From Epithemia pelagica (taxonomy: Eukaryota > Protista > Bacillariophyta), in NCBI GenBank assembly GCA_946965045.2, contig OX337235.1, positions 310,001-374,000 on the forward strand: a stretch of 64,000 nucleotides of DNA, in the 5' to 3' direction. Both the position numbers and the translations under genes were made by a program. Positions 13,080-37,136 of the stretch are shown here, one piece after another. The stretch's first letter is position 1. The number at the start of each line of letters is the position of its first letter. The notes below the pieces were generated by a model. The model made no database searches. It was not told where the DNA came from and was given only the letters and a program-made list of their open reading frames with translations.

Positions 13080-13101
13080 GAAACCACAAGGAAATAAGCT
13101 T

Positions 13102-13115
13102 TGAGACTGTTAATC
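13102..13115 (-). promoter_or_regulatory. Primer-binding site of element 2, complementary to the tRNA-Asn(GUU) anticodon stem-loop
   Basis: Plus strand TGAGA-CTGTTAA-TC abuts the LTR: 5-nt stem arm, canonical CU-GUU-AA loop, and the first two bases of the returning arm. Confidence 0.7.
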
Positions 13116-13898
13116 TGTTACAATTCTTTCTGAATCGTAGGGACATTGATGCTCGGTAGAGCAGACAGTCAGGTAGGTCACCAACCGATACAAGCTTCTC
13201 AGGGTCAGAGAAGCAAGCAAGTCGAAGTCTATCAGAAGGATAGTCGGGACACAAAAGAAGATGTGATAAATGGTGATATTGTTAGATTGTGTGTTGATTA
13301 CTACGATAGGTCTACGTGAAATGTTCGGTCCTGCCAAGGGTCATGTGTCATAGGTTCTTGGCGGCAACAGGTTTGGAATAGTTGGAGTCGATTCATGTGA
13401 TGTATATGACATGTATATGTGGACGGATAACATATACAGGGTCAACAGCTCTTGCTTTGGGTTGGCATAGTTGTTTTCATGGCGCGCAGCTTGTTGACAA
13501 TTTGGAGATTGTGGGAATGGAAATATGGTCTCGCGTGATCGTGTGTCGTGCTTGGAATACTTAGACCGTTGGGTCGGATAGATGCCGACAGCGCTCGGAT
13601 GTCGCTTGGGCGCGCTCGATGATTTCGGGCGCGTACGCTTAGGGCGTTAGTATAATGTCCGAGCAACGGCCAAATTTACGTCCGTTGTAATACCGCACGA
13701 CCCAGTTTAGTCTTGAGAGTGAGTTCGTCAATCTATTCTCACTTTTCATGATTTGCGAAGAAATATAGGTCGATATAGCGCGAAGCTAGGGAACATAGCT
13801 CGAAGCTAGATGGCATGATGCGATAGCACGAGGCTATGTGACATGGGGAATCGATGAGATGTAGAATCTAACCACCATAGACGGTGAGAATTCTAACA
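13116..13898 (-). repeat. 5' LTR of element 2 (783 bp)
   Basis: Direct repeat of 5515-6297. Confidence 0.97.
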
Positions 13899-14864: not shown

Positions 14865-14866
14865 CG

Positions 14867-14880
14867 CTCTATAGCGAAAA
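14867..14880 (-). promoter_or_regulatory. Putative self-priming PBS of element 1
   Basis: Minus strand TTTTCGCTATAGAG abuts the 5' LTR and is the exact complement of the LTR segment 14947-14960. Confidence 0.75.
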
Positions 14881-15275
14881 TGTTAGAACCAGTTGCTCAG
14901 CCTTCAGCCTATGCAATGGCACGCTTGTTTCTCCTTACAAACTTCGTTTTCGCTATAGAGTGAGCTCTCTCAGCTCGTCGTTAATCTAGTCTTAGTTTGA
15001 GCTTCCACGACCTTCTCCGATCAAAATGTCCCTGTAACTTCTTGTCGTGGTCATTCCAAAGGCATTAAGACCGGCGTCTGATCCGGCCATGGCTTTTCCT
15101 TTCTTGTTATCCTTGTTATCATGATGTGGTTGACTTGTGTCCCCATCTGTATTGCTGCCGTCCCAGTATGACTTCTTGTCTCCCTGGTGGACAAGTTTGG
15201 TCTTTGGCGTAATCGGCATTGCTTCCGAATGACCAGCTTCCGAATCGTTCGTCCGTCGGTTCTCGTGCTTCAACA
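14881..15275 (-). repeat. 5' LTR of element 1 (395 bp)
   Basis: Direct repeat of 1256-1650. Confidence 0.97.
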
Positions 15276-15506
15276 GCTACAAAGCTTGCCCAGATGCGTA
15301 CATCGAATGTCATTCATTCCCGTCGGAAGCGAGATCGACGAAGAAAAGAATTTGCTGATCTCAAGTCAGAATGCAGCCGGCTTCAAGCTGAACACTCCTC
15401 TTTGGAAGAGGAGCACAACCGCTTGACACACTTACTACAAGAGGCGACGACTGTAGCGAATGGACTAGATGATTCGAAACCACCAGCTAAAAAGAGAAAG
15501 AGTTAA
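15276..15506 (+). pseudogene. 3' part (bZIP domain) of paralog A, downstream of element 1
   Basis: NVIHSRRKR-x9-L-x6-L-x6-L-x6-L. Rejoins 1255 in frame (MDEAT|KLAQMR) and matches the C-terminus of 27486-29598. Confidence 0.88.
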
Positions 15507-18111: not shown

Positions 18112-21100
18112 ATGTCATTTCCGTATCGAGACAACAATCGCAACCACAATCCATATCACCCGAATCATCGTGGTTCCGGTCATGTTCATGCACCATCAGT
18201 ATCGCTCTCTCAAACAGGAGATTTCACTCCAGTGTCGGGTGTGACTGCGACAACTTCTTTTCCAGCCGCCGCTCCTGCACCCGATGCGCCACCACAACCA
18301 CAACAGTCGCACCTGCAACAGCAAGTGCAGGACTTGCAACAGCAATTGGAACAAAAGGATGAATCCTTGTGGGATGTGTCGGCGACACTGGCGACTGTTC
18401 AAGCGGAATCGACGGTTCGACTCCAACAAGTGCAACAAGAATCGCAGTCCAAAATTGCCCAACTCGAACAACAAGTGCGACAATTGCAACACGAAGCCCA
18501 ATTGTTGCTCGTCCAAAAACAAAGCCAACAACTCCAACAAGCCAAGGCCAGTTCCAATGCCGCAGCTTCTACCAACAATACCACACGAGGTTTGTCACAG
18601 CACCACGCCAAACGGCCTCGATCGTCCATTTCCTCCATGCCCACTGTGGTTCCACCTCCTACACCTCAACCATTCTCCTCCTCCAGATCAACACGTCCCT
18701 CCTCCTCGTCGTCCTTTTCGGTTTCGTCGCCCGAGTTTCCCCTTCCCGAAACACCCTTGCCTATCCACAAGGAGAAGGAACAACCACAAGACGATCCTCC
18801 TCCTTCCCCCGAAACAACACCAACAAACACTTCTTCGAAACCAATCACTACTACTACCTCCTCGGTGCCCCCTGCGACACTGCTTCCACCAACAGCAACA
18901 GGTTCGTCTTTTGCTGGGCCGTCATGGTCCTCTTCCTTATCGCCCTTGTCGTTACCACACTTGTTGCTTCAAAGCATTGCCGCTGGTACGATAACAGGCA
19001 ATGATGGAGACTCGGTACCAGAGTCCTTCGACGAGAATCCTTCCTGGTCTCGTCAGCACAAGGACGACAAGAACCAGCGTCGGCAGCAGCCAACCACCCA
19101 GCAAAGGTCGTCAAGTCGCCCCCGCAACAACAACAAGAACAACACTCCGTATCCCGAGGCGCTTCAAGATTTGTACGAGTACAAACCAGAATCTCCTCCG
19201 TGGAAGCAGGCACCACATCAACAACAACACTATCAAGACCGTTTCAAGGCCTTGTTGACACCCCTGGTACGGGTGGCCCCTGCCGGAGGGAATGCCAACA
19301 ATGTACCAGTTTTGCAACTCGAACAAGATACCCTCTTGTGTTTGCTACAAGAGTTTGTGCTTCCGGTACGGTTGGTGCAGCAACAGGAATCGTCTCATGT
19401 GGCAATTCGTTCTGGTCATTCTTCTCCCTCGGCTCCGTCTCCTACTAGCAGTGGAACATGGCGCGACTCGTACCACTGGATCTTGACCCTGTTGCCCTGG
19501 TTGCATCAAGCACTGCTTTGGGCTCGTCCCGAAACCTGTCGCTGGATCGTACAACGAGAGCAACGTGAAAACCCTCCAGACGTTCCTACGGCGACTGTGC
19601 CAACCACACACTGCACACCAACAACAACAACACCCGACATGTGGTCGAGAGAGTCTTCTCGTCGGGGTCGTACACTGCGGGTTCGATCGTCGACTTTGGC
19701 CAAGGAAGTAGTATCCTCGAATCAGGATGGTTCCATGGAAACAACACCAACACCAACTGGTAGCAAAACCACTTTCCAGAAGGATTGGCGCCGTGACTTG
19801 GTCGACCGAGCCATTCAAGTCTTGTGTCACATGGCCTTGTTTCAATTTGAGCCACATGTCTCAAACGCGGGTAACAGCAGCAGCAACACCCAAGAGAGCA
19901 CCACCAGCAAAGAGGACCGGACGGAACGACAACGTCAACATCAAGCTTTTTTGGGTGCAGTCACTGGGTTGGCACCCTTTCATGTCACCGGTACGAATGA
20001 CGACGACGAGGAGGATCCCTATTATGTCAGGGACCATGACGAACGAATCGCCTCGGAACGGTATTTACTTCAACTCCAACTCTCGGTTTGGGCCTTGCGG
20101 ATCCTCCAAACCTTGCTGGGACATGTTGTGGTGGGGGAAGGCAATGCCAATTCCATGTCCCATGACAAGAAACGGAACCAAGCCTTGATTCGGAGCTGGT
20201 TGGAACGATTGGGTATGGTTCCAGATCATGAACAGGACAGTTCGTCCACCAATGACGCACCAGAAGGTGACCATCCGGATGCGGAAAACACAATGCCCGA
20301 GGACACGTCCCTCTTGGAAAGCACAGAGGCATCTCCTCATTCATCATCACCACCACATCGATTTCATCATAACCTGTTGTTGTTCTTGTTGCGACGGGCC
20401 ATGGACTTGCAAATTGCGCAACGCCAACTCCTTCCCAATGGTCACGACCCGGTGCAGCGCACCAAAAATGGGCGTCATCGCCGACTCCTGGGTGCTCCCT
20501 CTTCGGCCGCTGCCGCGGCAGCCTTTTATCAGAAGTCCAAACGACGAATCCTGCGACGAACCGCATCCTTGGCCACCACCATCACCACCACGACGACCGA
20601 TACGGAAATGACACCCGAGTCTCGTTTGGCCGAACTACAACAACAGCACGTGGATCGTGTGTTTCCAGTGGATTGGTGGTTGCCCCAAGCGCCCTGGGCT
20701 ATCCATGTATCGACTGGCTATCCCCACGACATGTACGGTGACCACGACAATGGCGATAGTGATGAGGAAGATGAGACCAACTACGCCTACCGAAAACGAA
20801 TTCATGCCATGATCTTGTGTGATCTTCAGCACGAACGAAACCATTGGTTGGTTCAGTGGATGACGGCGGCCATGGCATTGATTCGTCAAACGTGGACGGT
20901 GAGTCGATCCACATCCTTTTCGTCCTCCGAACATTGGTATACCCTGTGGATGATGGCACCGCAGAAACGTGCTCGCTACGTGTTGGCTACCGTGTTGGAT
21001 TGGACGCAACTCGTGTTTCTTCCCCAACTCAAACAGTGGGGAAACCTGCGTCGTCCAGTCCAGGACCAAGAATACGAAAACAGTGACAGCAATAACACAG

Positions 21101-22053
21101 AGGAAGAGGGACCCTATAGTGTTGGTTCGGCACAAGCCTTGTCCGCATTGGAACTGGAATGTGTTTGGTTAATTACCAATTTATTGCAAGAGCCTCAGTT
21201 GGGTGGACATGCCTTGGTTTGTACTCAAATGGGTGCCATGTCGTTGCCACTCCGGTTGCCCACCAATCACAACCAGCTCACCACGGACGCACACCGTACT
21301 TCCGCGGCAAGCAGCACTTCCATCCCGCTGAATCTGGCACCCCTGGACACGAGTGCCTTGACTCCGTCCTACTCGGCCATTGGTGTCTTGTCGCAAGTCC
21401 TCTTTGAATTGGTCCAACGACAGCACGTCGAATGCGAACAAAGCTTTTATGAAAGGGACAAGGAAGAGAAAGAAGAAGAACAAACGAAAAATCGTGAACA
21501 GGAATGGACTAGGTTGCGTGATGCCATTGTTGGCTTTTACGATGGCTTGTTGCGGATTACGCAGTTCAATCGGCAACAACAAGATGCCTTGGACGAGCAA
21601 CTGCAGCAGCAGCAACACGTCAAACTTAGTAGTCCGAAGAACCGAAGCTTGACCTTTTTGACACAGACCATGGAATGTCAAGACTTGTATACCAGTGCCA
21701 TGTCGGTGTTGCTCACAGCCTATGACATGGAACAAGAGGAACATCCACCCATACCCTCGTCGTCGTCATCATCCACTTCTGCTCCTCCACCGGCACATGC
21801 GCCGAATGGCGATTGGAAATCGTGGAATCCGGAACACGACACGGTCTGGATGCGTCGAACGAACCGTTCCTACGACGAGTCTTGGAGGAGGACGAGTAGG
21901 CTCATTACCACGGCCAGTAGTCGACTGGTCCCCGTCTCTTCCGGCATTGCCGCTCTTCTTCGATTGCAGTTGGAGGAATTGGAATTGGATCAAGAAGAAC
22001 AAGACGAAGAAGAACAAGAGCAGCAACAACAACAACGTGCGGGACGCCGATAA
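18112..22053 (+). CDS. Large hypothetical protein: N-terminal coiled coil, S/T/P/Q-rich linkers, helical blocks
   Basis: 1326-codon open frame; first ATG at 18112. No family recognised. Confidence 0.75.
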   Translation: MSFPYRDNNRNHNPYHPNHRGSGHVHAPSVSLSQTGDFTPVSGVTATTSFPAAAPAPDAPPQPQQSHLQQQVQDLQQQLEQKDESLWDVSATLATVQAESTVRLQQVQQESQSKIAQLEQQVRQLQHEAQLLLVQKQSQQLQQAKASSNAAASTNNTTRGLSQHHAKRPRSSISSMPTVVPPPTPQPFSSSRSTRPSSSSSFSVSSPEFPLPETPLPIHKEKEQPQDDPPPSPETTPTNTSSKPITTTTSSVPPATLLPPTATGSSFAGPSWSSSLSPLSLPHLLLQSIAAGTITGNDGDSVPESFDENPSWSRQHKDDKNQRRQQPTTQQRSSSRPRNNNKNNTPYPEALQDLYEYKPESPPWKQAPHQQQHYQDRFKALLTPLVRVAPAGGNANNVPVLQLEQDTLLCLLQEFVLPVRLVQQQESSHVAIRSGHSSPSAPSPTSSGTWRDSYHWILTLLPWLHQALLWARPETCRWIVQREQRENPPDVPTATVPTTHCTPTTTTPDMWSRESSRRGRTLRVRSSTLAKEVVSSNQDGSMETTPTPTGSKTTFQKDWRRDLVDRAIQVLCHMALFQFEPHVSNAGNSSSNTQESTTSKEDRTERQRQHQAFLGAVTGLAPFHVTGTNDDDEEDPYYVRDHDERIASERYLLQLQLSVWALRILQTLLGHVVVGEGNANSMSHDKKRNQALIRSWLERLGMVPDHEQDSSSTNDAPEGDHPDAENTMPEDTSLLESTEASPHSSSPPHRFHHNLLLFLLRRAMDLQIAQRQLLPNGHDPVQRTKNGRHRRLLGAPSSAAAAAAFYQKSKRRILRRTASLATTITTTTTDTEMTPESRLAELQQQHVDRVFPVDWWLPQAPWAIHVSTGYPHDMYGDHDNGDSDEEDETNYAYRKRIHAMILCDLQHERNHWLVQWMTAAMALIRQTWTVSRSTSFSSSEHWYTLWMMAPQKRARYVLATVLDWTQLVFLPQLKQWGNLRRPVQDQEYENSDSNNTEEEGPYSVGSAQALSALELECVWLITNLLQEPQLGGHALVCTQMGAMSLPLRLPTNHNQLTTDAHRTSAASSTSIPLNLAPLDTSALTPSYSAIGVLSQVLFELVQRQHVECEQSFYERDKEEKEEEQTKNREQEWTRLRDAIVGFYDGLLRITQFNRQQQDALDEQLQQQQHVKLSSPKNRSLTFLTQTMECQDLYTSAMSVLLTAYDMEQEEHPPIPSSSSSSTSAPPPAHAPNGDWKSWNPEHDTVWMRRTNRSYDESWRRTSRLITTASSRLVPVSSGIAALLRLQLEELELDQEEQDEEEQEQQQQQRAGRR

Positions 22054-23284
22054 TGTGTGGTTCCGCATGATCGACGGCTCGCTATGACCCTGGGGATTTG
22101 TTGTCTGCTCCTTTCGTTTGGGTGAGTCGACCGCCAACCGATACTAGAGCTACCGTCCCTGGGACCCAATGATTTGAAGCTCAGCGCACCCGGCAGATGA
22201 ATCTTTTAGAGTCGGTGGCCATGATGGTAAACGTGTTTGTGGTGGTGCTGTCGCAATACTGTCCCGACGACGACCACTCACATTCCCCAACACGACGCCA
22301 AACAGAGAATCACCAGGTGTAGTGTGCATGTTGGGTTTTTGGGGGGAAGCTCCGAAACTTGTGCAATCTATAGAGAGAGAGTGTGTCCGGTCCTCATTCT
22401 GCTTCTTGTGGTGGTTGTGGATGATTGATAATGTCCCTCCTGGAGTGCCATCGTGTGATTGTGTCCCTTGGAGGAACTCGGAAGGAAGGATAGCTACCTG
22501 TTACATGTGTCTGTTGGGGAATGGGGTTCGACGTTCGACGTTCCACGCTCTCTACGCTACCTCTAGAGATAGACCTAATAGAGGAGTAGCACTATTTTGT
22601 GGATAGCACGGAGTCTTTTTTGGTGAACATTCCAATTCGGCGCGCCAGCCTCTACGAGCAATGCCCCGTTGACAAGTTTAGATATCCTGTAGGATCCGAG
22701 GTCAACGGTCATGGCACGGCCGGCTCCACGGTCGGTTGGTCGTGTAGCGCGGCGAACACTTTTGAGATTGCACCATCCACGCTGGGTATGTTGTGTGCAC
22801 CGACGTTCATCGTGCCTCCTCCTTTTCTCCATGGCATCCAGAGACGACTGTAACAACAACAACGTCAACAACCTACATCCTTGAGAGAGTGCCATCCTAC
22901 TAGAGAGTGAGAGTACTGCGAGGTTTGAGTTCGTTTGAGGTTGGCTGTAGGTTTTCGGTTGGTGGTTCCCAAAGAAAAAAATTGGCAGGGTCGTTCTGGA
23001 AGAAAAGGGAGCGCTTCCAATTCGGTGAGTGTGGTGGGACGCAGCGCAAGTGGGGAGAGAAGTATTTTTGGGGAAATCTTGGGAGATTGAATTTGGGGAA
23101 ACAATTACACAACAACAATAACAAGAACAACGACTTGGTGCCAAACGATTTGGTTGTTTGGACGCTCTCGCAACCACAGGTTCCACTTTACAACCACTCC
23201 AATTTGCCATTCGACACTCCTTCGTCTTGTCTTGTCTTTGCTTCTTCTTCTTCTCTATTGAGGTGATACAACAACAGTACGGAA

Positions 23285-26140
23285 ATGCGCGATTACAATC
23301 AAATTGTCAATCTCGGCAAGTTATCCAACCAGAACAACAACCACCATTCTCGAGGATCGAGCAAACGAGGGCGTCCTACCAGTAGTACCACTACTACTAC
23401 CAATAGTCACTCTCCCTCGCAATCGCAACAACCACCACGCCCCTATCCCGACGACGAGGAAGAAAAAAAGGCCGACGATCACCATCCATCCGTGCCCAGC
23501 AGTAGTAGTGCCACGGCGGCCTCCTCGTACACCTCCACGGCACCCAGTACGCCTTCCACCACGGCCACGGCTCATGAAGCAACCGCATCGCAACAAGCAC
23601 CACCCCACAGTCCTCCTCGCACGAGTACCATGACGACAACCACGACGACAACCAGTGCCAATTTGTCGCCCACGGATGCCTTGTCCATGCGCCGCGAAGG
23701 GGCCGAAGCCACCATTGCTCGATTGCGGCAGGCCTTGGACGAATCCACGAGCAGTGAATCGCAAACCAAATCGGCCTTGGCCAAATCCGAAGCCGTCGTG
23801 TTGGAATTGAAATCGACGGTCCGCCAAATGAAGCGACAAATGGAGTCTGAAAAACAAGCACCGACGGATTCCTCCACCACCACGGGCAGTACGGCGCCCC
23901 ATAACCAAAACAATACGAATCAGGATCAACGATTGGGCGAATTGCAATTGCAATTGGATCGGGCCCATGCCCAAATGGTCACGGCCGATATGGTGCGCAA
24001 GGAATTGGAAGATACCCTCGAGGCGGAACAATATACGTGGGAATTGCGCGTCCAAGATCAAGAAAGACAAATTGCCGAATTGACGACGGATTGTGCCAGT
24101 CTGGTGAATGATTTGGAAAAGGCACGGACCCAACATGAATCGGAACAAGATGCCTGGCTCCAACAAGCCCAAGAATTGAATCAACAAATTGCCAAACTCC
24201 AACAAAAACAAGATGCTATTGAAGAACGACAATATGGCAACAACAACAATAATACCGAATCCGCCACGCAAGATTTGGTTCTGGCCGACTTGGAAGACAA
24301 GATTCAACAATTGGAACGAGAACGAACCGAATTGCAGGGCTGTTTGGATGAAGCGCTCAAGGAATTGGAAGCCGTTGATGCCGAATTGCAACAACAACAA
24401 TCGCCCAACGACCACAATAGTGACTTGGTGGAACCCCTCCAACACTTGTATCGATGGTTGTTGGAACGCGATGGACAAGCCGATTCCTACAATCATGGCA
24501 TTTTGACAACGACCACTAACCAAAATGGCCGACCATCCCAAGATGCCAAGGCGATTTTGAGTGCCATTCAAGATCATTTGCGACAGCACGAACCCGTCAC
24601 GGCGACGAATGCGACGGCCGCACTCGTGTCCATGGACGAACGAAAACGTTTGCAAGCCTTGGAGGCGGAATGTTCCGTCCTCAAGGGTGATTTACAAGCC
24701 CGACAAGAATCGTCGGACGAATTGCGGTCCAGTCTCAAGGAAGCTGTCGCCCTCCTCAAACCCTTGCAAGATGCCGTGGCGCAAGGAGATCGCGACAAGG
24801 CCCGATTGCAACAGCATGTGCAATCCTTCGAAACGGTCCAACAAGAGTTGCAAACCAAACAAGATGAATGCGACAATTATCAACAACAAGTGGAACGGTT
24901 GCAACTGGAATTGACCCAAGCCAAGGCCGTGACGGCTTCGTCGCTGGTGCAAACGGTCCGACAACAACAATTGCATGGGGGACGGGACTCGCCCGTCGAC
25001 GCCTTGCCGGGGGAATCCAAGGCGCGGGCCCGATTACGAGCCAAACGACAAGAAGAAGAACAAATCAAACAAATGTTGGATTCGGCACGGAATCGATTCC
25101 GATCCTTGCAACAACAAAATATGGATTTGACGGGAGCCAATACGGAATTGCAAGCTCAATTGGATACCCCCAAGGCCTTGCAATCGGCCGTCCAAGACGA
25201 ACTCCAGACCTTGCAACAGGAATTGACGACGACCAAACGAGAATTGGCCCAAAAGGAACAAGAATTGGAATCCCTCGAATCCGATTTGGCCACGGCCCAA
25301 GCCAATATACGACAATTGGAAGAACAACAAGAACAAGCCTCGTCCACCTTTCACAACCATACCCAATTGGAACAAGCCAAACAACGAGTTGAGGATTTGG
25401 AAACCAAATTAGGGGAAACCAATCACGAATTGCAACTGAAACAAACGGTCGAAAAGGCCCTCAACAAATCCCTCAAGGAAGCCTTGAACTTGTTGCGGCC
25501 TCTCCAACGGCATTTGGAAGATGCCGAACAAGAAAAACGAGCCTTGGCGACGGAATTGGAAAGCCTCAAGAAACGACTCGTGACATCGTCGACGCAACCA
25601 AATAATACGACCGCCTTGACGACCATGGCCCTGTCGGACCATGATTCCCAAAACGACCAAAAGGTGAAAGAATTGGAATATGCCGTGACGCAATTGGAAC
25701 AGGAAAATTCCCAATTGCACGATGCCTTGGACGATATGAGTCACAGTTTGAACAATGCCAGTCATGTCAGTGGGAGTACGGCGACACAAAATCGCAATAA
25801 CCATAGACTCAAGGAGGAATTGGTGGAATTGCAATCCCGCTACGAAGTGACGCAATCGCGATTGCAAGATGCCATTGTCGAAAACCATGCCTTGCGAAAC
25901 AATGTACCATCCACCACCATGGCGTCGGCCAGTTCCTTGGTATCCTCGTCCTCCCAAGGCGTGGGAACTGCAGGACCTTCCTTGACGAACAACCACACCA
26001 CAACGAGTCGCATGATACGGAATCGAAGAACGGACGACCGACCCGCCGCGACGACTTCCTGGCAAACCACATCCACAACAAATACGACGAATCCGAATCC
26101 CAACACGGGCAGCAAACGACGGAATCGACTCTCGTATTAA
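23285..26140 (+). CDS. Long coiled-coil protein (951 aa) with repeated LKEAxxLLxPLQ motif
   Basis: Long open frame with heptad-rich Q/E/L sequence; SLKEAVALLKPLQ and SLKEALNLLRPLQ. Confidence 0.8.
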   Translation: MRDYNQIVNLGKLSNQNNNHHSRGSSKRGRPTSSTTTTTNSHSPSQSQQPPRPYPDDEEEKKADDHHPSVPSSSSATAASSYTSTAPSTPSTTATAHEATASQQAPPHSPPRTSTMTTTTTTTSANLSPTDALSMRREGAEATIARLRQALDESTSSESQTKSALAKSEAVVLELKSTVRQMKRQMESEKQAPTDSSTTTGSTAPHNQNNTNQDQRLGELQLQLDRAHAQMVTADMVRKELEDTLEAEQYTWELRVQDQERQIAELTTDCASLVNDLEKARTQHESEQDAWLQQAQELNQQIAKLQQKQDAIEERQYGNNNNNTESATQDLVLADLEDKIQQLERERTELQGCLDEALKELEAVDAELQQQQSPNDHNSDLVEPLQHLYRWLLERDGQADSYNHGILTTTTNQNGRPSQDAKAILSAIQDHLRQHEPVTATNATAALVSMDERKRLQALEAECSVLKGDLQARQESSDELRSSLKEAVALLKPLQDAVAQGDRDKARLQQHVQSFETVQQELQTKQDECDNYQQQVERLQLELTQAKAVTASSLVQTVRQQQLHGGRDSPVDALPGESKARARLRAKRQEEEQIKQMLDSARNRFRSLQQQNMDLTGANTELQAQLDTPKALQSAVQDELQTLQQELTTTKRELAQKEQELESLESDLATAQANIRQLEEQQEQASSTFHNHTQLEQAKQRVEDLETKLGETNHELQLKQTVEKALNKSLKEALNLLRPLQRHLEDAEQEKRALATELESLKKRLVTSSTQPNNTTALTTMALSDHDSQNDQKVKELEYAVTQLEQENSQLHDALDDMSHSLNNASHVSGSTATQNRNNHRLKEELVELQSRYEVTQSRLQDAIVENHALRNNVPSTTMASASSLVSSSSQGVGTAGPSLTNNHTTTSRMIRNRRTDDRPAATTSWQTTSTTNTTNPNPNTGSKRRNRLSY

Positions 26141-26309
26141 CATGAGAGTCGCAAATTTTGGGTGCATATTCTCTCTACAGTCTCTCGCTGGCACTTGTGG
26201 TGGTGGTTGAGTAACACTTGGTAATACTAGTTTATACTTCTCCTTGGGGTTACAAAACACACACGCACATGTGTGGATGTGATGATTGTTTGACAACAGT
26301 AGTTCCTTA

Positions 26310-26544
26310 ATCTATAGACGCAGTTCCGTGGGTTAATGAGAAAAGGAATGCCCTACAATAGGTTTGCTACCGGTAATTACACAGTCCTAGCACCATTGGA
26401 ATGGTGCAAAAAACGGACGATTTATCTATAGACGCAATTCCGTGGGTTATGGGTTAATGAGAAAAGGAATGCCCTACAATAGGCTTGCTACCGGTAATTA
26501 CACAGTCCTAGCACCATTGGAATGGTGCAAAAATCGGACGATTT
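26310..26544. repeat. Tandem duplication (114 bp + 121 bp) covering the left end of a MITE
   Basis: Copies 26310-26423 and 26424-26544 differ by 3 substitutions and a 7-bp duplication (TGGGTTA) in copy 2. Confidence 0.92.
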
Positions 26545-26828
26545 ACCCGTAAAACGAGCATGCCCCCAAAGAGTTTCATCCGTCCATAAAATGAGAACTA
26601 TAAGTTGGATTTTGATGAGCCCGGGTGGGATCGAATCCTCTTTTGAAGAAGATTCAAATGATAATCATTAGACTAGCTAACTCAAAGTACTTCTAAAGTT
26701 GCAGTTTCAAACATGTGGCATTTCGGCTTTCAGACTTAACGGCAGATGCGTTGAGCACTACACATTGGTCCTATACAAATTTGAGCGGAAAGATTCAACG
26801 CATGGTGCTAGGACTGTGTAATTACCGG
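26491..26828. mobile_element. MITE-like non-autonomous element with terminal inverted repeats and TA flanks (Tc1/mariner-type signature)
   Basis: 26488-26517 (CTACCGGTAATTACACAGTCCTAGCACCAT) is the exact reverse complement of 26802-26831. TA at 26489-26490 and 26829-26830. No ORF inside. Confidence 0.75.
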
Positions 26829-27485
26829 TAGTCCTCCTTCTAGAGTGAGGATAGCCGCATGATTTCAAGAGCGACCCATACGCGTATCAGCATTTCTGTA
26901 TGGCCCCTTCGGAGTAAGTCTTCTCCTTCTTCCGTTTCGTCGGAATTTTGAAGCAGTCGATATAATGGTGGACATGTCCCATCGTCTGTCACAGGGGTTG
27001 GCGCCACTGGTTTGGAATCACATCATCATCTCCTGTTTTCCTTTCGAGAGCGGAACTTTGCACAACAAAGTACCAAGCCCAAAGCCAAAGCTCTATATTA
27101 TCATCTTGGGATATCATTTTGTTAGATGGAGACGCCAAAGCCCAAAGCCCACGTTGAGATTGCACATCCACCAAAGATATTCCCACGCCAGCTCAAGACT
27201 CTTATTAAATAGAACCGTTTGCAGAAACAACAACAACAAGCAACCACGAAAGCACGTGCTTCATCATCAATCATCATCTCTTCTCTCTTGGGCAGTCTCT
27301 CCTCTCCTCTCTCGGTCTAAGAATACAGAGAGCGAAACACTCGAGAGAGCACCAGGCACCACACAAGGCACCGCCACAACACAAGACGAGAGATCTGGAC
27401 TTGTGTGTGTGGGTATTGTTGGTCGTTCCCAAACGTCTCGAACCTCTGTTTGGTTGTTTCGTGTCCACTTACACACACAATCAGT

Positions 27486-29598
27486 ATGGAAGCAGGCAGA
27501 GTTTCATCGGTATCCTCCAACCATGCTGCTGCTCCTCGTGTGCCGTATGCCGCTGCTCGAGGCGCAGCACCACCCGCACCAACCGCTGCCCTTCCACCAC
27601 AACAACAACAGCAAGTCTCTTGGTTGTTCCCCACTCCAGCAACTACTACGAATGGTGAAACAACCACAGCACTCGGACGACCACCACAACCACTACAAGG
27701 AGGAGTAGGAAGAGGATCCACGTACCAGCACACCTCCACTACCCTCCACAACAATACTACGAATGGGACGAACCAAGCAACCAACAACAAGAAAATGCAG
27801 AAAACACGGCTTTCTTGGAATCTGTCCTTGTCTGAAGAAGAAGAAGATGTCGACGACCAAGCACAACCACCACCAGAGGCTTCTCCCGAAACGTGGACCG
27901 AATCCAACCTCTTCTGGTTGCAAGAATTGCGAGACCGTGCCCGGCATCATGTCGAAGAGGTACGTATATAGAGAGAGTCTGTATGTGGACCCTACAGAGA
28001 GAGTGTGTAGGAGAACCACCATGATTTGTGTTTGGAAAGTTGGTTGGTTCCATCCACTGGATGGACACCACACAAGAAAGGATCCTAACCGAGTGTGGTC
28101 CGGCAGGAGCACACGAGGGACAGGTTCGGTGGTGGAGCACTGACTGTTCAACTCTCTCATGTGTGTGTTTCTGCTGTTGTGCTATTCGTTTCGGTGTATT
28201 CTTGCTGTTGGCTGCTCGTTGTTCTCCATTTCCACCTTTCCACAGTACATTCGTCACGTCATTCCGTTGGAACGCAAACGTGCCTATGTCCAGGCCCGGA
28301 CGGTTTGTCCCCACTTGGTGGCGACGGAATCGGATGCCATTCCCTTTGTCCGATATTGTCAGTACAATGTCTGGGATGCGGCGGAACGACTCGTCTTGTA
28401 TTGGACCGAACGCCTCGCTGCCTTTGGACCGGATCGTGCCTTTTTGCCACTGACGCTCACGGGACGGGGCGCCTTGACGCAAGCCGATATTTTGAGTTTG
28501 CAAGCCGGATATCCCTGTATCTTGCCCGATACCACGACGTCCAATGGCGGTCAACAAGTCGTCTTTGGCGATCGACGACAATATGTGCAAGCCGCCACGA
28601 CGCAAACCCGTGTCCGGTCCGCCTTTTATCTCTGTCACTTGTTGGCCCAAGATGACCGCGCCCAAACCAAGGGCGTCTTGCTGTTCATTTTACTCGTCAT
28701 GCCGCGCGTCCAAGGCTTTGATCGCGCCTTTGTCCAAAAAAGTTTTTCCCTGGCCGTCCACGTCTTTCCCATTGTCTTTTACGTGCACTTGTTGAATTGC
28801 TTGCCCAAAACGCCCGCCAAACGTTATGCCGTCCAAGATATAATCTCGTCGTATGTTTTGGAAGTGATGGACTTGGGGTTTTGTGCCACGCAATTGACGG
28901 TCCACATTGAACGGGAACCGGGTCAATTGCTGCAGGAATTGCTCGATTTGGGTTTGACCAAGGAGGGCATTCCCACCTCGATTGGAGGCACGTGGACCTA
29001 TGATCAAGCTGCCGTCTGGTGTCGCGAACGAGCCCGTATCGATGAACAACGACCAGACGAACCACAACAACAAGTGCCAGCAGCGGCGCAACAACACAAC
29101 AAGGTGGTACACCCACAACAGGCGGCGGCGGGCATGATGGGAACCACCCTGCCACTGTCCACTCAGTCCACAAGAGCCACGGCCAAGAATCCGCCTTCGA
29201 CGGGAACACTCCACAGTAGCACTGCGCCAACCTCTCGGAAACGAGTTGCCAGTACTTCGACTACTACAACTACGACCAGCCAACCAGCACAACCCGACGA
29301 CAACAACCCCCAAACGACGACGACGCCCTCGAAAAAGCCATATTTTTGGTCACCCGTGACGGGAGCCACAGAAGAAGAACGACGCTTGCAATTGCGAACT
29401 TACAATGCCATTCATTCGCGACGCAAACGGGCTCGACGACGACAGGAATTTGAACATTTAAAAGAAGAAAGCAGTCAACTCAAAACGGAACATGCCCTTT
29501 TGCTGTCCGAACAGGCCCGACTCACAAAACTGCTCCAACAAGCTACGACGATAGTACAACAACTGCAACAACAACAACGACCAAAAGAAACCGAGTAA
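27486..29598 (+). CDS. CRAL-TRIO/Sec14-like domain + C-terminal bZIP protein (paralog B, intact); exons 27486-27959 and 28246-29598
   Basis: GTACGT..CACAG intron joins RARHHVEE|YIRHVIP. ESDAIPFVRYCQYNVWDAAERLVLYW..FGPDRAFLPLTLTGRGALT. NAIHSRRKR-x9-L heptads from 29404. Confidence 0.85.
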
Positions 29599-31009
29599 CT
29601 GTGGGACTCCAGTTTCCCAAGACGCGGGTCCGTTATTCTCAATTAGGGCCAGTTCACCCAGTGGTACGGTACAGAAACAACGGCCACTTTGCCAACAGAG
29701 CAACGAACAAAGGGTCTGTCTCCATTGCAACCAATACTCCGTTCCAAAGCTCTTAAAGCGTGTGATTGGCACGGCTGTCTTAACGAAGGCGCAATGGGTA
29801 ATGAATCCAACCAAAAGCTTTGTAAGCTGAGAAAAACGGTTTGGTATCCAAAAATTGATCTTTTGAAAAGCAACGCGGAACTACTCCCCTATTATTATTA
29901 TTTGTTGTGACTGCTACACACAACATCAGCAATACTCTTCCATTTGGATAATTTTCGCGTGTCATGATCCCACTTCGGACCTTGCGATCAAACTTGCCAT
30001 GTATTACTACGCAAAAATGGTTGTATACCACATGTGGGATTCACCAACGCTTCCTCTCACTTTCACCGAGGAAACTCCAACGACAGTATAGCAAGAGGAG
30101 GCACGCAAGGTATCTGTTTCGTTGAATGGAAGGCTCCCCTTATTCCGCACACAAGGCTACGACCACCTTTGGAACGTCAACCAAAGAACACATTACCAAG
30201 TATTGCATGGAAGGTGAGAAAAGGTCGTGAGGACACTGGTTTTTTCATTGTGGCTTGGCCCCGTACATTGACTCTGTCGATGACAATCGGGTTCACTTAT
30301 GGATCGTTTGTTGGGTTGTTTTGTTCATTCCATACCGCGGACATGGGCCATCCATCAGGGTGTGACCAGATTAAGAATAATCAGCAGGAAACGGTCATGG
30401 CAACAAAATGGATTCTGCTATCGGCAGGAGGACGGTGCGACATTCCGATCAGGTCCTTCTGGCTGTTGTTGAAGGGTTGTTGTGGTAATAGCCTCGCACT
30501 CGTAATGGTCGTGGACCGCTCCCGGCATTGCAGTGCCTTCCTCGCCGACACCATGGCGACGAGTGTTGTTGTTGTTGATGTTGTTGGTTGTGGTAAATGA
30601 GGCCAACATAAAGGAATTCTCTGGGTCTGCCGCGGTCCTTTCTGCCAGGTCATGCTCGAGAGGGATAGAAGAGCCAGAGCACAGACACGGGAGACAACAA
30701 CGAACAGCACGTGAAACAACAAGAACAGCAACAAGTATCCCGGGATGACTGTGATTTCCATGACACGACCACCCTTTGTGCAATCCTAAAACCGTCTACC
30801 AGAGGGAAAGGAGACACTTTTGTCGATACTTGTGTATTCTAAAGAGAGAGTCGATAAGCGTGGAGTTCGGTTTCGTAATGTCTATATATAGAGTGATTTG
30901 GTTTGTTGGTTCGTTAGCTATAGCAATGGGTGCCATTTTTCGTACAGAATACAAGGGAATGCATCCATGACCCTGGACAAGTGTCCTCGCTGTTGAAAAG
31001 CTGTTTCCG

Positions 31010-34000
31010 TCAAGTGTCCGACTTGACGGTGTTGTCGTCGTCTTGGGAAGCAGATGACGTCGAGGTTGTAGAGGAGGAGGAGGATGACGATGACAGCAAC
31101 TCACTAAACAACAATCCTTCTTCCACAATACTTGCCGAACTGAGTGATTCCAACAGAGCATCTGGATCGGTTGTTGTCGCGGTTGCCTCATCCACATCAA
31201 AGACACGTTCCAAGGCATTGCCATCATCATCATCATCGTCGTCTACAATCCGTTGGGCAAGTGCCGTAACCTCGGGAGGAATCCGAGGACGTGTGCGACC
31301 TAGTTTGAGCTTTCGACTCAAGACATGATCGGCATTGTCGGTATCCTCTTGTTCCAAGTCCAGAACGGAATCCAGGCTTGGATCAGTACCGCCATGTCTT
31401 GGTTGATGGTGGTGCCCCACTCGTCTCATACGTGACGGAGCATTACTATACGGCTCATTGGTGTGTCGCTTTCGCGATCGGTGAATGGTTTTGTTGGACG
31501 AGGCGGATGGTTGAAACTTGTTGGTTTGAAAATGAACCGCCGCTCGTTTGTTGAGTTTGGACAAGCCTTCTAAATTAAAAACTTGGGCTTCCAATTCGGC
31601 CAAGGCATGATACAAGGCGGCATACTGTGGATCGAGTTCCATGCCCCGTTCATAAATTTCTCGCGCTTCTTGTATTTTGCCCGCACTCAGTAGGGCATCG
31701 CCAAAGGCTCGATACAATTCCACACTATCGGGAGCACATTCCAAGCCTCGCCGGAGCAACAAGAGTACGAGACCGGTATTGCCCGTCCGGCGTTCAATTT
31801 CGGCGGCCACCATCCATCCAGATCCATTGTGTTTGTCGCGCGTCAAGGCTTGGGTAATGAGCACTCGCGCCGCCGAACAATTGCCTTGTCGCAGTTCGAG
31901 GGAGGCCCAGGCTTGTAAAAGGGGTGTATGATTGGGTGCATGTTGGAGTCCCTTGGAAAACAGCGTCCGGGACACTTGCACATGGCCCTTGCGTCCTTCC
32001 AAAATGGCATAGGCCAGCCACAAGGCGCCGTGTTTGGGATTGGATCGAAGTCCACATTGAAAGAGGGTTTGGGCCTCTTCCCATTGTCCGGCTCGCATTT
32101 CCATGACCCCCCAGGCTTGCCAGGCCTGGGCATGGCGAGGATTAATCGTCACGGCGCGTTCAAAGAGAGGCCGTGCCCGGTCTTCTTGGCCCAGTTGGAC
32201 TTCACTGAGGGCCGCGCCCAACCACAAGAGCGACGAGGCATTGCCGTGTCGTTCAATGCCATCGGCAAAGACTCGTCGGGCCTCCATGGGATTGTTGCTA
32301 TTGAGTTCGAGCATTCCCAAGGTATGCGTCAAGAATCGTGTTCGATCCCGATGCGGCGAATCCATGCCCAAATGTTGCCACCTGGCTTGTTCCAATCCCT
32401 GTTGCAACAATTGTCGTCCTCGACTGACATTTCCCATGGACAATTCCAATTTGGCATATCCATGATAGACCGAAGCGGCATCGGAACAATTGGCCTGTAC
32501 GCCCCGATCAAAAATCCTCCGTGCCTCGTCCACGTTGCCTCGTTTGAGGAGGGCATTGCCATAGGAGTTGTAGGCCGGACCATGTCGTGGATCTAACAAC
32601 AAGGCTTCTTCAAACAATCCTTGTGCTTGTGAGAAATTGGCAACGCGTTTGTTGTTTCCCAACGACGACGACGACCTGTTTCGACTATGAGGAGACGATT
32701 CGGCTTGTTGTTGTTGTTGTTGTTGTGGATGTTTCAATTCGAGGAGTGCATAGGCGACCAGTGTGGGCGCCGACGGTTGAATGCACAAACTGGTTCCATA
32801 ACAGGACCGAGCGCCGGTGAGATTGCCCAAACATTCTTCGACTTTGCCTGCCGCTTGCCACAAGGAAAAGTCTCGCGGATGATGTCGCAAGCCTTCTTGC
32901 AGAATTCGACGGGCCTTGTGATATTTGCGGTTCCGGACTTGCAAATTGGCCCAGGCATTGTAGACACGACCATCGTTGGAATTGGCCTTTTTGTTGTTGT
33001 TGTTGTAGTGGATGGAGGATCTCTTGTTGTTTAGGCGAAAGGATTGTTTGGTTGGGTTCTTGTTCCTGTTCTGGTCATTCCAGGAGGAAGAATGGGAATT
33101 GTTGCTAGTATTCTCCAATGGCAAAAACGACGAGGTTGTTTGCGGTTGGATATCGTTTGGTGTGGTGTCTGCGTTGGTCGTTCCGGTACCCTCGGGCCAG
33201 GCCGCTGTCGACGACGTCCTTGTGGTTGCGTTCTTGCTGCTGGCAGTCCTTGTTCTGGACCGACGAGGTGATGGCACGGATTGTTTGGTCAAGCGTTGCA
33301 GTGTGACTTCTTGGACCTGTCGTGGATTACTGGTGGTTTCTGTTGTCGTCGTCGTCGTCATCATCATCATGTGATGTCGTCCTTCCAATCGGGCCAAGGC
33401 GAGTTGCGCCCACGTATTGGTGGGATCAATTTCGTCGAGACAATACTGCAACAAGTTGCGGGCCGTCGTGACATTGCGATTCAAGTATCGTTCTTCCAAC
33501 CAGGCCCAGGCCAAGTACACTTCGACTTGTTCGCGTCGCGACGCGAGTTTGGACACGTGCGTTTGATACAAGTGTTGCGCTTCTTGGTGTCGGTCTTGAG
33601 CAATCCACAATTCGCCCAAGGAACAGACCAAGGCGGCCGTACTGGATTTTTCCAAGGCCCGTTGCCACAAGGTTTCGGCCGCCTCCAAATGGCCTTGTCG
33701 TTTTTCGTACAATCCGTAGGCATGACAGACATGGGTATTGTAGGGATCCATTTGCAAGGCCCGATTGTACAATTGACGAGCCTTGTCGTCGTTGTGGTTG
33801 TCATTGTCGTCCTGGCCCGTACGACCTTGTCGGGTCGTCGTTCGGTGGACTTCTTCATGGACGGCCCAGGCTTGCCACAAGTGAATGGACTGGGGACACG
33901 CGCGGGTGCCCCGTTCAAAGGCTTGAGTGGCTTCCGACCAGTGATTGCGACGCGCTTGCAATTTGGCCAAGGCCAAGTAGGAATGAGAATCGGTCGGATC

Positions 34001-34612
34001 CAGTTCCAAAATTTGGTCCAACAATTCAATGGCCTTGCGCCATTGGCCTTGGCGTTCCAATCGTTTCGCCTTTTGAAACATGCGGCGAATCGGACCGCGA
34101 GTGTCGGAACCAGCGTGTCGTCGCTGTGGTGGTTGTGGTTGATTCAACTTTGCGGAACCTTGTTGTTGTTGTGGTGGTGGTGGTGGTTGTGTGAGTGCTT
34201 CGTTGGTGGATGATGATGATATGGATGGTGGCGACTTTGGATTGTTGTTGTTGTTGTCATTGTCCTCGGGATGCATGGCTGGTTCCGTGACTGAGGAAAG
34301 CGATGAGGAGGACGACGACACGCAGAGTTGGGTGGTCCTTGTCCTTGCATGACGACGACCAAACGTTGCTTCGAGTCCCAGCAAGGAGGACGACCCTTGG
34401 ATGGTGGGATACGGATGCCCGACTAGTATTTTGGGTGGGTCCCCTTGGACCAGTCTCGTCGTCCTCCAAGCAGTAGATGATATTGTTGTTCTTCTCCATG
34501 TTATTCTTCTTGTTCTAGTTGGTACTGTTAGGAGGAGGGCCATTGTCGGATGGCAACAATACGTCATGGAACCCAACCACAACCACAACACTAGGACGAA
34601 CCGAATCACCAT
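31010..34612 (-). CDS. HAT/TPR-repeat helical protein resembling organellar mRNA maturation factors (Mbb1/HCF107 type), with probable N-terminal signal peptide
   Basis: Many repeats such as LWQAWAVHE, RVYNAWANLQ, AWQAWGVME, LLQAWASLE. Hydrophobic MVIRFVLVLWLWLG at ATG 34612; the frame is open to 34864. Confidence 0.75.
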   Translation of the reverse strand: MVIRFVLVLWLWLGSMTYCCHPTMALLLTVPTRTRRITWRRTTISSTAWRTTRLVQGDPPKILVGHPYPTIQGSSSLLGLEATFGRRHARTRTTQLCVSSSSSSLSSVTEPAMHPEDNDNNNNNPKSPPSISSSSTNEALTQPPPPPQQQQGSAKLNQPQPPQRRHAGSDTRGPIRRMFQKAKRLERQGQWRKAIELLDQILELDPTDSHSYLALAKLQARRNHWSEATQAFERGTRACPQSIHLWQAWAVHEEVHRTTTRQGRTGQDDNDNHNDDKARQLYNRALQMDPYNTHVCHAYGLYEKRQGHLEAAETLWQRALEKSSTAALVCSLGELWIAQDRHQEAQHLYQTHVSKLASRREQVEVYLAWAWLEERYLNRNVTTARNLLQYCLDEIDPTNTWAQLALARLEGRHHMMMMTTTTTTETTSNPRQVQEVTLQRLTKQSVPSPRRSRTRTASSKNATTRTSSTAAWPEGTGTTNADTTPNDIQPQTTSSFLPLENTSNNSHSSSWNDQNRNKNPTKQSFRLNNKRSSIHYNNNNKKANSNDGRVYNAWANLQVRNRKYHKARRILQEGLRHHPRDFSLWQAAGKVEECLGNLTGARSCYGTSLCIQPSAPTLVAYALLELKHPQQQQQQQAESSPHSRNRSSSSLGNNKRVANFSQAQGLFEEALLLDPRHGPAYNSYGNALLKRGNVDEARRIFDRGVQANCSDAASVYHGYAKLELSMGNVSRGRQLLQQGLEQARWQHLGMDSPHRDRTRFLTHTLGMLELNSNNPMEARRVFADGIERHGNASSLLWLGAALSEVQLGQEDRARPLFERAVTINPRHAQAWQAWGVMEMRAGQWEEAQTLFQCGLRSNPKHGALWLAYAILEGRKGHVQVSRTLFSKGLQHAPNHTPLLQAWASLELRQGNCSAARVLITQALTRDKHNGSGWMVAAEIERRTGNTGLVLLLLRRGLECAPDSVELYRAFGDALLSAGKIQEAREIYERGMELDPQYAALYHALAELEAQVFNLEGLSKLNKRAAVHFQTNKFQPSASSNKTIHRSRKRHTNEPYSNAPSRMRRVGHHHQPRHGGTDPSLDSVLDLEQEDTDNADHVLSRKLKLGRTRPRIPPEVTALAQRIVDDDDDDDGNALERVFDVDEATATTTDPDALLESLSSASIVEEGLLFSELLSSSSSSSSTTSTSSASQDDDNTVKSDT

Positions 34613-35435
34613 GGAACGCCAGGACTGTATTTTCGACGCTATCCGTCGTCTTGAGACTTGTGGTGGTGCTGATGGACGTGGTCTCCGTCGTTGACTCGGA
34701 AACAATGGTCCACCGCCACCACCACCACCACCAACAACAAGACAATTCGGACCAGAATCGGCCACCGAATTCTTCTTCTTCATGGCAGCAGAGGAGTCAC
34801 AAGAAGGACCACCAACAAGAACTATATAGTATGTCGTCCCCTTGTTTCGTTTCTCCACAAACACACGCAGAGACGCTGCCGTTGCTGTATCTATCTATAG
34901 TTCGAGTGGTTGGTGGCTGTTGTTGTTGTGTTGGTTTCTGTTTTGGTCGTCGTCGTTGTCGTTGTGGTTGCGAGACACACAAAGAGAAAAAGACAGACAC
35001 ACCCATAAGAGGATGATGTTTCGTGGGTGGTCCATGCTGTGGTGTGTGGTGTCGTGTGTGTCATGTATCTTATTACGCCCTAGCGGTTAGACACATAGAC
35101 AATTTGTAAAACATTATTTCACAAACGCTTCTATATGTAAGATAGTGCATGCACCCTCCATTCCAACGTACGTCAGTGAAAACTTCCTTGGTTCGCGACT
35201 CGAACGCGTCTAGATCGAGTCCCACCAACGAGTCGGCTCGGCCACATGCGCGCGCATGGCGAGACGACCCCTTTGCCCCATGGCAAGAGTCGCCACACGA
35301 CAGCAACTCTTGTGGTGGTGGTGGTGGTGGTTGTTTTCTTGTATCCGTTGCCCCATCCAAAGGACCACACAGAGGAACCGGATTGGCGCTCACTCTCTCT
35401 CTCATATTATGTCGTTGTCGTAGTGGTATTCGAGA

Positions 35436-37136
35436 GTGGTGGTTCGATTCCTGGCTGTCCCTTGGCCCACACACCAAACCAACACCAGTGAGAATGGAGG
35501 ATATACCTCGTGTTCCTCCCATTACACGACGAAAACGAAGAATCATGACTGTGTTCCTCTCCGGTACTCCGTCATGCTCTACCACAACTCTTGGCTGCTG
35601 CTGCAAGGGCAAACGACTCTTGAAGCGACGACATTGGTAAGTGTCCTTACTATATATGGATGGAAGGAATGCCAAACTCGAATCGTTGTGGTGGTGTACT
35701 ATCTATTACTGTCATATCGTCATGTGTCTCACACTATATGCGATTGGGACTCTTGGAACCATTGTCACAGGTTCCGACTTCAAGGCATTTTGTTTTGGAG
35801 TGCCGTGGCATTTCTGTATTACATTGAACTCACCGTCATGGATCCCCAGCAGCAATACCACTCGTCGTCGTATTTGCGTCCCCCCACGAGCCGTGCCTCC
35901 CGACACTTGGCGGCAGTGGCGGCGGTGACGGAAACGACGAACCTCCCCACAACAGCTGCGACCCACCATTATTCTTGGGACAACCACCCTGTGGTCCCTC
36001 CAAACACACAGATTTTAGGTTTGCCGAATGATTCCCAAAATCAAACGACGACGACGACGACGACGACCGTAAAGCCAAAGCCCATTTTGTGGGTTCCGTT
36101 TTACCCCTGGGAAGATGACGGGTGGAAAGTTCTACAACAAGAACAAGAGCAACAACAACAACAACGAAATGATTTCGACAAGAAGCTTCCAACATGTCAT
36201 GGTTTGGATCCTTCCTCTTTTTCTACCACAACAAGAACGATTCGACACAACCACAGCGACCATGACACCTTGGCGGTGGCGGTCCTGTCCGAGCCCCACC
36301 AACCCTATTATCCCTATTGTCCACGGCAGTTTCGCAATGTGGCCGTGATGCGTCATCCCCTGGACCGTGTGGTATCCCATCTCCAAGCACAACAATGGAC
36401 CGAGCAGCAGGTCCGGCACCAACTCGTAGTAGTACGGATGGACCCACAACGACACATACTCCGAAACAACAACCAGAACAACGAGAACCAACCGGAACCA
36501 GCACCTCGTCCTGCTCTTGTCCCCCACAGGAACAACGCCATGGAAACAAACAGTGGACCCTCCGACCACAACAACAACAGGCCCGACGATTCCTCCCTGT
36601 ATTATTCGTGGATCAACAATAGGGTCATTCGGCAGTTATTGGGACCAAATCGGTTTCTCGACCCTACTCCCATTAACGAAGTGGACCTGGTCCGGGCCCA
36701 ACAAATTGTGGACCAGTTTCCCGTCTTTGTGCCACTCGAACAACTCCAACACCCCCACGTCGTGGCCTTGCTCCAACGGGAAATTCCAGAGTACCATAAT
36801 GCCGAGACACTCCCCCTCCACGCGTGGCTGGAAAAAACAGCAGCAGCTGCGGCACACCTGGATGATCACGCCATGGGAATGATATCCTCCTCCTCTTCTT
36901 CGTGGTCGTCGCATGCAAAGCAATCCTCCTACTCCTACAACAACCCAAGCGCCGAACTCTTGCAACTCTTGTACGAGGAAAACAAGTACGATCTTCTCTT
37001 GTATCAATACCTTTACGATAAATTAGGGTTGGGTCCCTGGACAGACAACAACAACAACAACAACAAGTGGAGTCCATCCAGGCCCCGAGCACAAGCAGCA
37101 GCAGCAGCAGCAACAACAACACAAAGAACCGAATGA
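35436..37136 (+). CDS. Sulfotransferase-like protein (3'-PB motif present); start uncertain
   Basis: VAVMRHPLDRVVSH, WINNRVIRQLLG and ENKYDLLLYQY resemble Golgi sulfotransferase motifs. Hydrophobic stretch FWSAVAFLYYIELTV upstream. Confidence 0.55.
   Translation: MVVRFLAVPWPTHQTNTSENGGYTSCSSHYTTKTKNHDCVPLRYSVMLYHNSWLLLQGQTTLEATTLVSVLTIYGWKECQTRIVVVVYYLLLSYRHVSHTICDWDSWNHCHRFRLQGILFWSAVAFLYYIELTVMDPQQQYHSSSYLRPPTSRASRHLAAVAAVTETTNLPTTAATHHYSWDNHPVVPPNTQILGLPNDSQNQTTTTTTTTVKPKPILWVPFYPWEDDGWKVLQQEQEQQQQQRNDFDKKLPTCHGLDPSSFSTTTRTIRHNHSDHDTLAVAVLSEPHQPYYPYCPRQFRNVAVMRHPLDRVVSHLQAQQWTEQQVRHQLVVVRMDPQRHILRNNNQNNENQPEPAPRPALVPHRNNAMETNSGPSDHNNNRPDDSSLYYSWINNRVIRQLLGPNRFLDPTPINEVDLVRAQQIVDQFPVFVPLEQLQHPHVVALLQREIPEYHNAETLPLHAWLEKTAAAAAHLDDHAMGMISSSSSSWSSHAKQSSYSYNNPSAELLQLLYEENKYDLLLYQYLYDKLGLGPWTDNNNNNNKWSPSRPRAQAAAAAATTTQRTE

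Follow-up and report, generated by a model that had tools for sequence, protein, structure and literature searches.

Does a diatom possess a protein in which a lipid-carrier fold is joined to a DNA-binding module, and could such a protein work as a lipid-responsive transcription factor? The question is raised by a locus of Epithemia pelagica (GCA_946965045.2, contig OX337235.1, positions 310,001 to 374,000, forward strand). This whole stretch of 64,000 nucleotides is called the window here, and all positions are counted from its first letter. From the letters alone, the original prediction had described at 27486-29598 a gene, here named gene A, which joins a CRAL-TRIO/Sec14-like domain to a basic leucine zipper (bZIP). 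There is very little doubt that gene A encodes a real, spliced fusion protein. It is a member of a large, unannotated diatom gene family whose proteins are composed of one to six Sec14 domains, a disordered linker and a divergent bZIP at the C-terminal end.

The product of gene A has 608 amino acids and is encoded by two exons on the plus strand. The gene is organized as follows.

27486-27959, plus strand: exon 1, 158 amino acids, from the open reading frame (ORF) and the splice model.
27960-28245, plus strand: intron of 286 nt, phase 0, GT..AG, between VEE and YIR, from the sequence and the depth of run X4.
28246-29598, plus strand: exon 2, 450 amino acids and stop, a single open frame comprising the Sec14-like domain, the disordered linker and the bZIP.
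28246-29052, plus strand: Sec14-like domain, modelled over 269 amino acids, with helices on the N-terminal side, a floor of beta-sheet and a helix (residues 190-209) that is the putative lid.
29053-29370, plus strand: linker of low complexity, predicted to be disordered.
29371-29574, plus strand: divergent bZIP, predicted as one continuous helix of 68 residues; N-A-I-H-S-R-R-K-R with the Asn codon at 29404, then heptad leucines.

The gene coordinates given originally proved exact, and both domains lie in one frame of exon 2. The start codon at 27486 is the earliest in-frame ATG downstream of a stop. The N-terminus encoded by exon 1 is of low complexity and rich in Q, T, N and P. The last ~24 amino acids of this exon (27888-27959) form a helix leading into the Sec14-like domain, and their pattern L.ELR.RAR.HV.. 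is conserved in homologs.

Is the predicted intron removed? Four runs contain the locus (X1-X4), all of one study. In runs X1-X3 the intron depth equals the exon depth, and these runs look like DNA. Run X4, dated 2024 and comprising 39 Mb of contigs, derives from another allele or strain. Here the depth is 6.9 in the intron and about 90-400 in the exons, a 20-fold intron depletion; this is the profile that would be expected of RNA, the type of the run being unrecorded. One X4 contig stops at 27959 and then carries the first 15 letters of exon 2, while a second contig begins in exon 2 and is preceded by the final letters of exon 1. These loose ends spell the predicted exon-exon junction. Exon 2 itself is gapless in X4 across domain, linker and bZIP. 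As judged from an X4 contig, the transcript begins at about 27161 or further upstream. Runs X1 and X3 also show a joint from 27613 to 29556 which omits 1942 nt and links two CAA/CAG (poly-Gln) repeats. It was rejected as a real deletion, being most likely a repeat-induced assembly artefact, and its shorter side has 20 letters only.

Comparison of exon 2 with the X4 allele revealed 24 synonymous and 8 non-synonymous differences; inside the domain the numbers are 17 and 3. The same allele carries an in-frame ACC insertion in exon 1 (27688) and, in the variable T-T-T-S-N-G-G loop of the domain, a +1/-1 indel pair separated by four bases (28538 and 28542). The frame is kept despite these indels, in keeping with a functional gene whose loop tolerates change. 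A further contig, L001 (ENA ERZ21939226 ctg1209l), is colinear with window positions 18277-36000 over ~18 kb at 94-96% DNA identity, and from this comparison would be either a divergent haplotype or the contig of a sister strain. With ~95% DNA identity, this contig encodes a counterpart of gene A, P0002, whose domain is 98.5% identical, and the changes fall mostly in the linker. Because of the 24:8 and 17:3 ratios of synonymous to non-synonymous differences and the 98.5% identical domain in L001, gene A is judged to be under purifying selection, and this across the whole domain. Taken over the alleles compared, selection is shown to act on both ends of the protein.

To which superfamily does the domain belong? 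A profile of 20 family domains gave ten matches in the PDB, all of them CRAL-TRIO chains, with CRALBP at E=3.3e-6 and alpha-tocopherol transfer protein (alpha-TTP) at about 4e-3. Used alone in phmmer, the domain of gene A matched the stand-alone proteins P0173 and P0174 of ~300 amino acids at E=6.5e-17 and 1.4e-14, respectively. P0173 is 30% identical to it over 264 amino acids (BLASTP E=4e-24), and the signature F-G-P-D-R-A-F-L-P-L-T-L is common to both. These two proteins exceed the Pfam CRAL_TRIO cut-off at 68-73 bits (P0173 at 68 bits on PF00650). Among the 20 family domains, 8 showed weak CRAL_TRIO_2 matches, and the two-domain member P0025 exceeds the CRAL_TRIO_2 cut-off. The fused domain probably evolved from stand-alone CRAL_TRIO proteins of the P0173/P0174 type.

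The predicted model of the domain possesses the elements of a Sec14 fold, with N-terminal helices, an alpha/beta part with a sheet floor and a helix in the gating position. Its best alignments are to alpha-TTP and CRALBP in their ligand-bound forms and extend over almost the entire fold, lid-position helix included. In the ESM Atlas, the shape search placed a mostly diatom CRAL_TRIO cluster closest (TM 0.81), and the search by sequence features returned no usable match for the domain. The most conserved signature of the family, R-A-F-L-P-L-T-L-T-G-x-G-A-L, occupies a loop (residues 65-78) which separates the sheet from the N-terminal helices and to which no secondary structure is assigned. Insertions in homologs cluster just before and after the lid-position helix (domain alignment columns about 290-390). 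As judged by profile homology and the predicted model, the domain of gene A is a member of the CRAL-TRIO/Sec14 superfamily. The earlier assignment, made by motif resemblance, was right: the PDB profile matches, the homology to P0173 and P0174 and the fold model all agree with it.

In the model of exon 2, residues 286-367 have a predicted local distance difference test score (pLDDT) below 50, and residues 376-443 form the helix of 68 residues at pLDDT 90-96. Neither the length nor the sequence of the linker is conserved among homologs. The spacing N-x7-R-x9-L-x6-L-x6-L-x6-L, reported originally for gene A and for a second copy in the window (paralog B), is exact in both. It occurs at exactly two sites in the six-frame translation of the window, 29404 and 15306, and in 0 of 50 residue shuffles. 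Alignment of 19 family tails showed that SRRKR is invariant and that the leucines keep heptad spacing. The tail profile matched GCN4 chains of the basic region plus zipper in complex with DNA at 8e-5 to 1.3e-4, followed by BACH1 at 0.0067 and ATF4 at 0.029, and the alignment to GCN4 is in register through the basic region.

The canonical bZIP basic region reads N-x2-A-A-x2-(C/S)-R. In gene A it reads N-x2-H-S-x2-K-R, which lacks the canonical set of DNA-contact residues. The description of this bZIP as 'canonical' was overstated, given its scores below the Pfam cut-off and the H-S and K in the basic region. Both the tail alignment and the modelled helix identify the C-terminus of gene A as a divergent bZIP. 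Its DNA specificity is probably unusual because H-S and K stand for A-A and C/S. On the tail sequences it is quite likely that the protein is a DNA-binding factor. In one branch of the family, comprising P0012, P0013, P0015, P0017, P0018, P0019 and P0020, the Asn is replaced by Asp (once by His), with S-R-R-K-R and the zipper kept. This branch may represent a different DNA specificity or a partner class which does not bind DNA.

How large is the family? An exhaustive hidden Markov model (HMM) search over representatives of clusters at 50% identity, to which no taxonomy is attached, gave 3657 proteins at E<=1e-3 and 2041 at E<=1e-10. At E<=1e-30, 808 remained, each representing one cluster, so the family is real and much larger than was supposed originally. 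Word-index protein searches, which demand shared exact words and are not a census, returned 23-27 relatives, nearly all of them hypothetical proteins of Epithemia clementina or from diatom assemblies. The architecture was counted in 157 sequences with one HMM for the domain and another for the bZIP. Sec14-like domain(s) followed by one bZIP were found in 146 of these relatives, distributed as follows.

One Sec14-like domain, one bZIP after the last domain: 82 proteins.
Two Sec14-like domains, one bZIP after the last domain: 41 proteins.
Three Sec14-like domains, one bZIP after the last domain: 19 proteins.
Four Sec14-like domains, one bZIP after the last domain: 3 proteins.
Six Sec14-like domains, one bZIP after the last domain: 1 protein.

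The remaining 11 relatives, which have no bZIP, are probably truncated sequences. In P0027 (Amphora coffeiformis, 1941 amino acids), P0036 and P0029, the single bZIP is preceded by four to six Sec14-like domains in tandem. The named sources of the family, all of them raphid pennate diatoms, are Epithemia clementina, Amphora coffeiformis and Entomoneis sp. CCMP467. From the latter two, complete transcriptome-derived ORFs with both domain and bZIP are available, which independently indicates that transcripts join the two domains. Separate transcripts for the two halves, the outcome that would have spoken against the fusion, were thus not what was found: the continuous exon 2 and the junction in X4 and the ORFs of Entomoneis and Amphora all join them.

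The second copy was found in the window by tblastn with the gene A protein. Its parts are listed below.

65-223, plus strand: paralog B exon 1, 53 amino acids, ending in VEE.
224-290, plus strand: paralog B intron, GT..AG, 67 nt, with position and phase (0, VEE/YIR) as in gene A.
291-1255, plus strand: 5' part of paralog B exon 2, Sec14-like domain and start of the linker, from tblastn, the ORF list and alignment.
1256-15275, no strand assigned: long terminal repeat (LTR) retrotransposon splitting paralog B, with LTRs, a target-site duplication and a nested element.
15276-15506, plus strand: 3' part of paralog B exon 2, remainder of the linker and bZIP (N-V-I-H-S-R-R-K-R) to the stop.

The presence of two paralogs in the window was correct in so far as a second copy exists, with a domain 48% identical to that of gene A and with the VEE/YIR intron in the same position and phase 0, as had been noted. 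Paralog B is not intact today, which is a caveat to the original prediction. The retrotransposon separates its domain from its bZIP, and the bZIP match (15219-15506) lies 14 kb from the domain. The LTRs of 395 bp (1256-1650 and 14881-15275) begin with TG and end with CA and are 99.5% identical, and a 5-bp target-site duplication, GCTAC, is present at 1251-1255 and 15276-15280. The element has its Copia-like gag/pol ORFs on the minus strand and contains a second, nested element, marked by a 300-nt direct repeat of 100% identity at 5515-5814 and 13116-13415. The LTRs are near-identical, and the insertion is therefore recent. When the element is removed in silico together with a single GCTAC copy, paralog B becomes one open frame of 397 amino acids through the bZIP; therefore it was an intact gene of the same kind as gene A until the recent insertion.

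On the other side of gene A and convergent to it, an ORF of 1284 amino acids is situated at 31010-34864 on the minus strand, and its counterpart in L001 has TPR-family Pfam matches. One X4 contig of 5.6 kb extends from the 3' end of gene A (29278) through this gene, which makes an overlap of the two transcripts at their 3' ends probable.

What could such a protein do? The bZIP of gene A would dimerise and bind DNA, and the Sec14-like domain would accommodate a membrane lipid or a small hydrophobic molecule. Occupancy of the pocket, or the membrane attachment resulting from it, may control nuclear entry, pairing and DNA binding of the bZIP, and the outcome would be a one-component lipid-responsive transcription factor. 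Overall, that the Sec14-bZIP protein belongs to a family of such factors is slightly favoured. For the part of this reading in which the domain is a ligand or membrane-lipid sensor controlling the factor, the sequence evidence leaves the balance about even. A bolder version, which is possible but held tentatively, takes the family as the diatom counterpart of nuclear receptors, namely a pocket-gated bZIP of novel DNA specificity with dozens of genes per genome. Under this version the ligands could be hydrophobic metabolites, for example carotenoid or tocopherol/quinone derivatives, sterols, oxylipins or phosphoinositides, and the tandem arrays of up to six pockets would permit combinatorial or cooperative sensing.

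Several results weigh against the lipid-responsive factor. None of the runs recorded as RNA contains the locus of gene A, and X4 is itself not on record as RNA. Neither gene A, nor its exon 1 alone, nor paralog B matched Pfam CRAL_TRIO (PF00650) or CRAL_TRIO_2 (PF13716), even at E<=1. In the profile alignment with CRALBP, the family misses three residues in the strand-loop which holds the 'E-N-F' of CRALBP, and the putative pocket could therefore be altered. The Pfam cut-offs for bZIP_1 and bZIP_2 (27.6 and 22.3 bits) are reached neither by gene A (12.7-17.5 bits) nor by paralog B (19.2 bits), nor by any other of the 19 members searched, 8 of which match at E<=0.1 (best 1.4e-4). In about 8 of the 19 aligned members, Asp or His stands in place of the DNA-contacting Asn, which casts doubt on classical DNA binding by the whole family; gene A and paralog B keep the Asn.

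Some of these results are equally at home in other explanations. The main rival, which we consider rather unlikely, retains the bZIP factor and treats the domain as a 'pseudo-Sec14', that is, a ligand-free module for protein-protein contact, oligomerisation or constitutive membrane anchoring, with regulation lying elsewhere, for instance in phosphorylation of the linker. Such a module fits the divergence of the gene A domain beyond the reach of Pfam and the position of the top conserved signature, which sits in a loop (residues 65-78) rather than in any evident element of a pocket. Up to six domains in a row resemble a scaffold as much as a sensor. The Sec14 modules of neurofibromin and Kalirin, known mainly as regulatory or targeting modules, also appear among the fold matches. 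The model nevertheless aligns best with two ligand-bound carriers, alpha-TTP and CRALBP, over nearly the whole fold with the lid-position helix, purifying selection extends over the entire domain, and the stand-alone relatives are ordinary CRAL_TRIO proteins; all three speak against a ligand-free module.

A lipid-transfer or lipid-presenting protein outside transcription is a quite improbable explanation. In this case the basic patch and the coiled coil would serve for dimerisation, binding to acidic membranes, or nuclear or organellar targeting only. The failure of every member to reach the Pfam bZIP models agrees with it, as do the similar scores of many generic coiled-coil families on single sequences and the replacement of the key Asn by Asp in part of the family. 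The tail profile points the other way, since its best PDB matches are the GCN4 DNA-complex chains, with the N and R-R-x-R-x-R spacing in register, and BACH1 and ATF4 come next. The first heptad Leu follows the basic region at exactly the bZIP spacing, SRRKR is invariant, and the helix is always C-terminal, after the last domain. That the fusion is an annotation artefact, with the two domains in separate genes or transcripts, or that gene A is a pseudogene, is effectively excluded. The absence of the locus from the runs on record as RNA would be in keeping with an artefact, and paralog B is indeed broken. Both domains of gene A, however, lie in one intronless open frame of 450 codons, the run with 20-fold intron depletion covers exon 2 continuously and shows the junction, the 24:8 ratio argues for constraint, and complete two-domain transcriptome ORFs exist in two other genera.

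How does the favoured reading, a lipid-responsive factor of Sec14 and bZIP parts, relate to known systems? The closest shapes to the domain of gene A are alpha-TTP and CRALBP, single-domain carriers of tocopherol and 11-cis-retinal without a DNA-binding extension. In contrast to them, the gene A domain fails Pfam CRAL_TRIO, has its own signature F-G-P-D-R-A-F-L-P-L-T-L-T-G and a strand-loop shorter than that of CRALBP. P0173 and P0174 differ from the gene A protein in having no linker and no bZIP. A Sec14 module fused to an effector, which it is thought to regulate or target, is found in SEC14L2/SPF (GOLD), the Kalirin/Trio RhoGEFs, neurofibromin (Sec14-PH) and PTPN9, all of which are among the fold matches.

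In aureochromes, the bZIP is placed before the sensor, the reverse of the order in the gene A family, where it comes after. Aureochromes are reported to be stramenopile proteins which join a bZIP to a small-molecule-binding sensor (PMC7670200, PMC5812316). They share with gene A the putative one-component logic of sensor plus transcription factor in a stramenopile protein, an analogy and not membership. Their sensor is a flavin-binding LOV domain whereas the putative sensor of gene A is a Sec14 fold, standard models recognise their bZIP, and a genome possesses a few of them compared with dozens in the Sec14-bZIP family. No Pfam match to PAS or LOV was obtained in gene A, and its only folded domain is the Sec14-like one.

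Plant class III/IV HD-Zip factors, with their START lipid-binding domain, and animal nuclear receptors likewise link a pocket for hydrophobic ligands to a dimerising DNA-binding module. Their folds are unrelated to those of gene A (START or the nuclear-receptor ligand-binding domain versus Sec14; homeodomain or zinc finger versus bZIP), their domain order is opposite, and they have no tandem sensor arrays. Full-text literature searches, on diatoms and in general, found no description of a Sec14 or CRAL-TRIO plus bZIP architecture. The SAK1 paper (PMC4067076), the only one in which bZIP and CRAL both figured prominently, was considered as prior art and rejected: the SAK1 domain, present in some bZIP factors, is an unrelated one of green algae with ~150 residues and a mostly helical structure, and the mentions of CRAL/TRIO in that paper are entries of gene lists only. 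Sensor domains fused to transcription factors and Sec14 as a regulatory module are both known already; the new variant here is the pairing of a Sec14-like domain with a bZIP.

Diatoms are major primary producers in which storage, photoprotection and signalling depend heavily on lipids, carotenoids and oxylipins. A Sec14-bZIP family of hundreds of proteins would be an obvious candidate for a link from lipid status to gene expression in these organisms. Its two halves both score below the Pfam thresholds, and it would therefore probably be overlooked when diatom transcription factors or lipid-transfer proteins are counted by domain. If ligand gating is true, the family would represent a new class of one-component lipid-responsive transcription factors and, by the H-S/K of its basic region, a new class of bZIP specificity. 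Components for algal gene switches under ligand control would also become available. If the domain is ligand-free, the family would still be a large unrecognised expansion of transcription factors in raphid diatoms.

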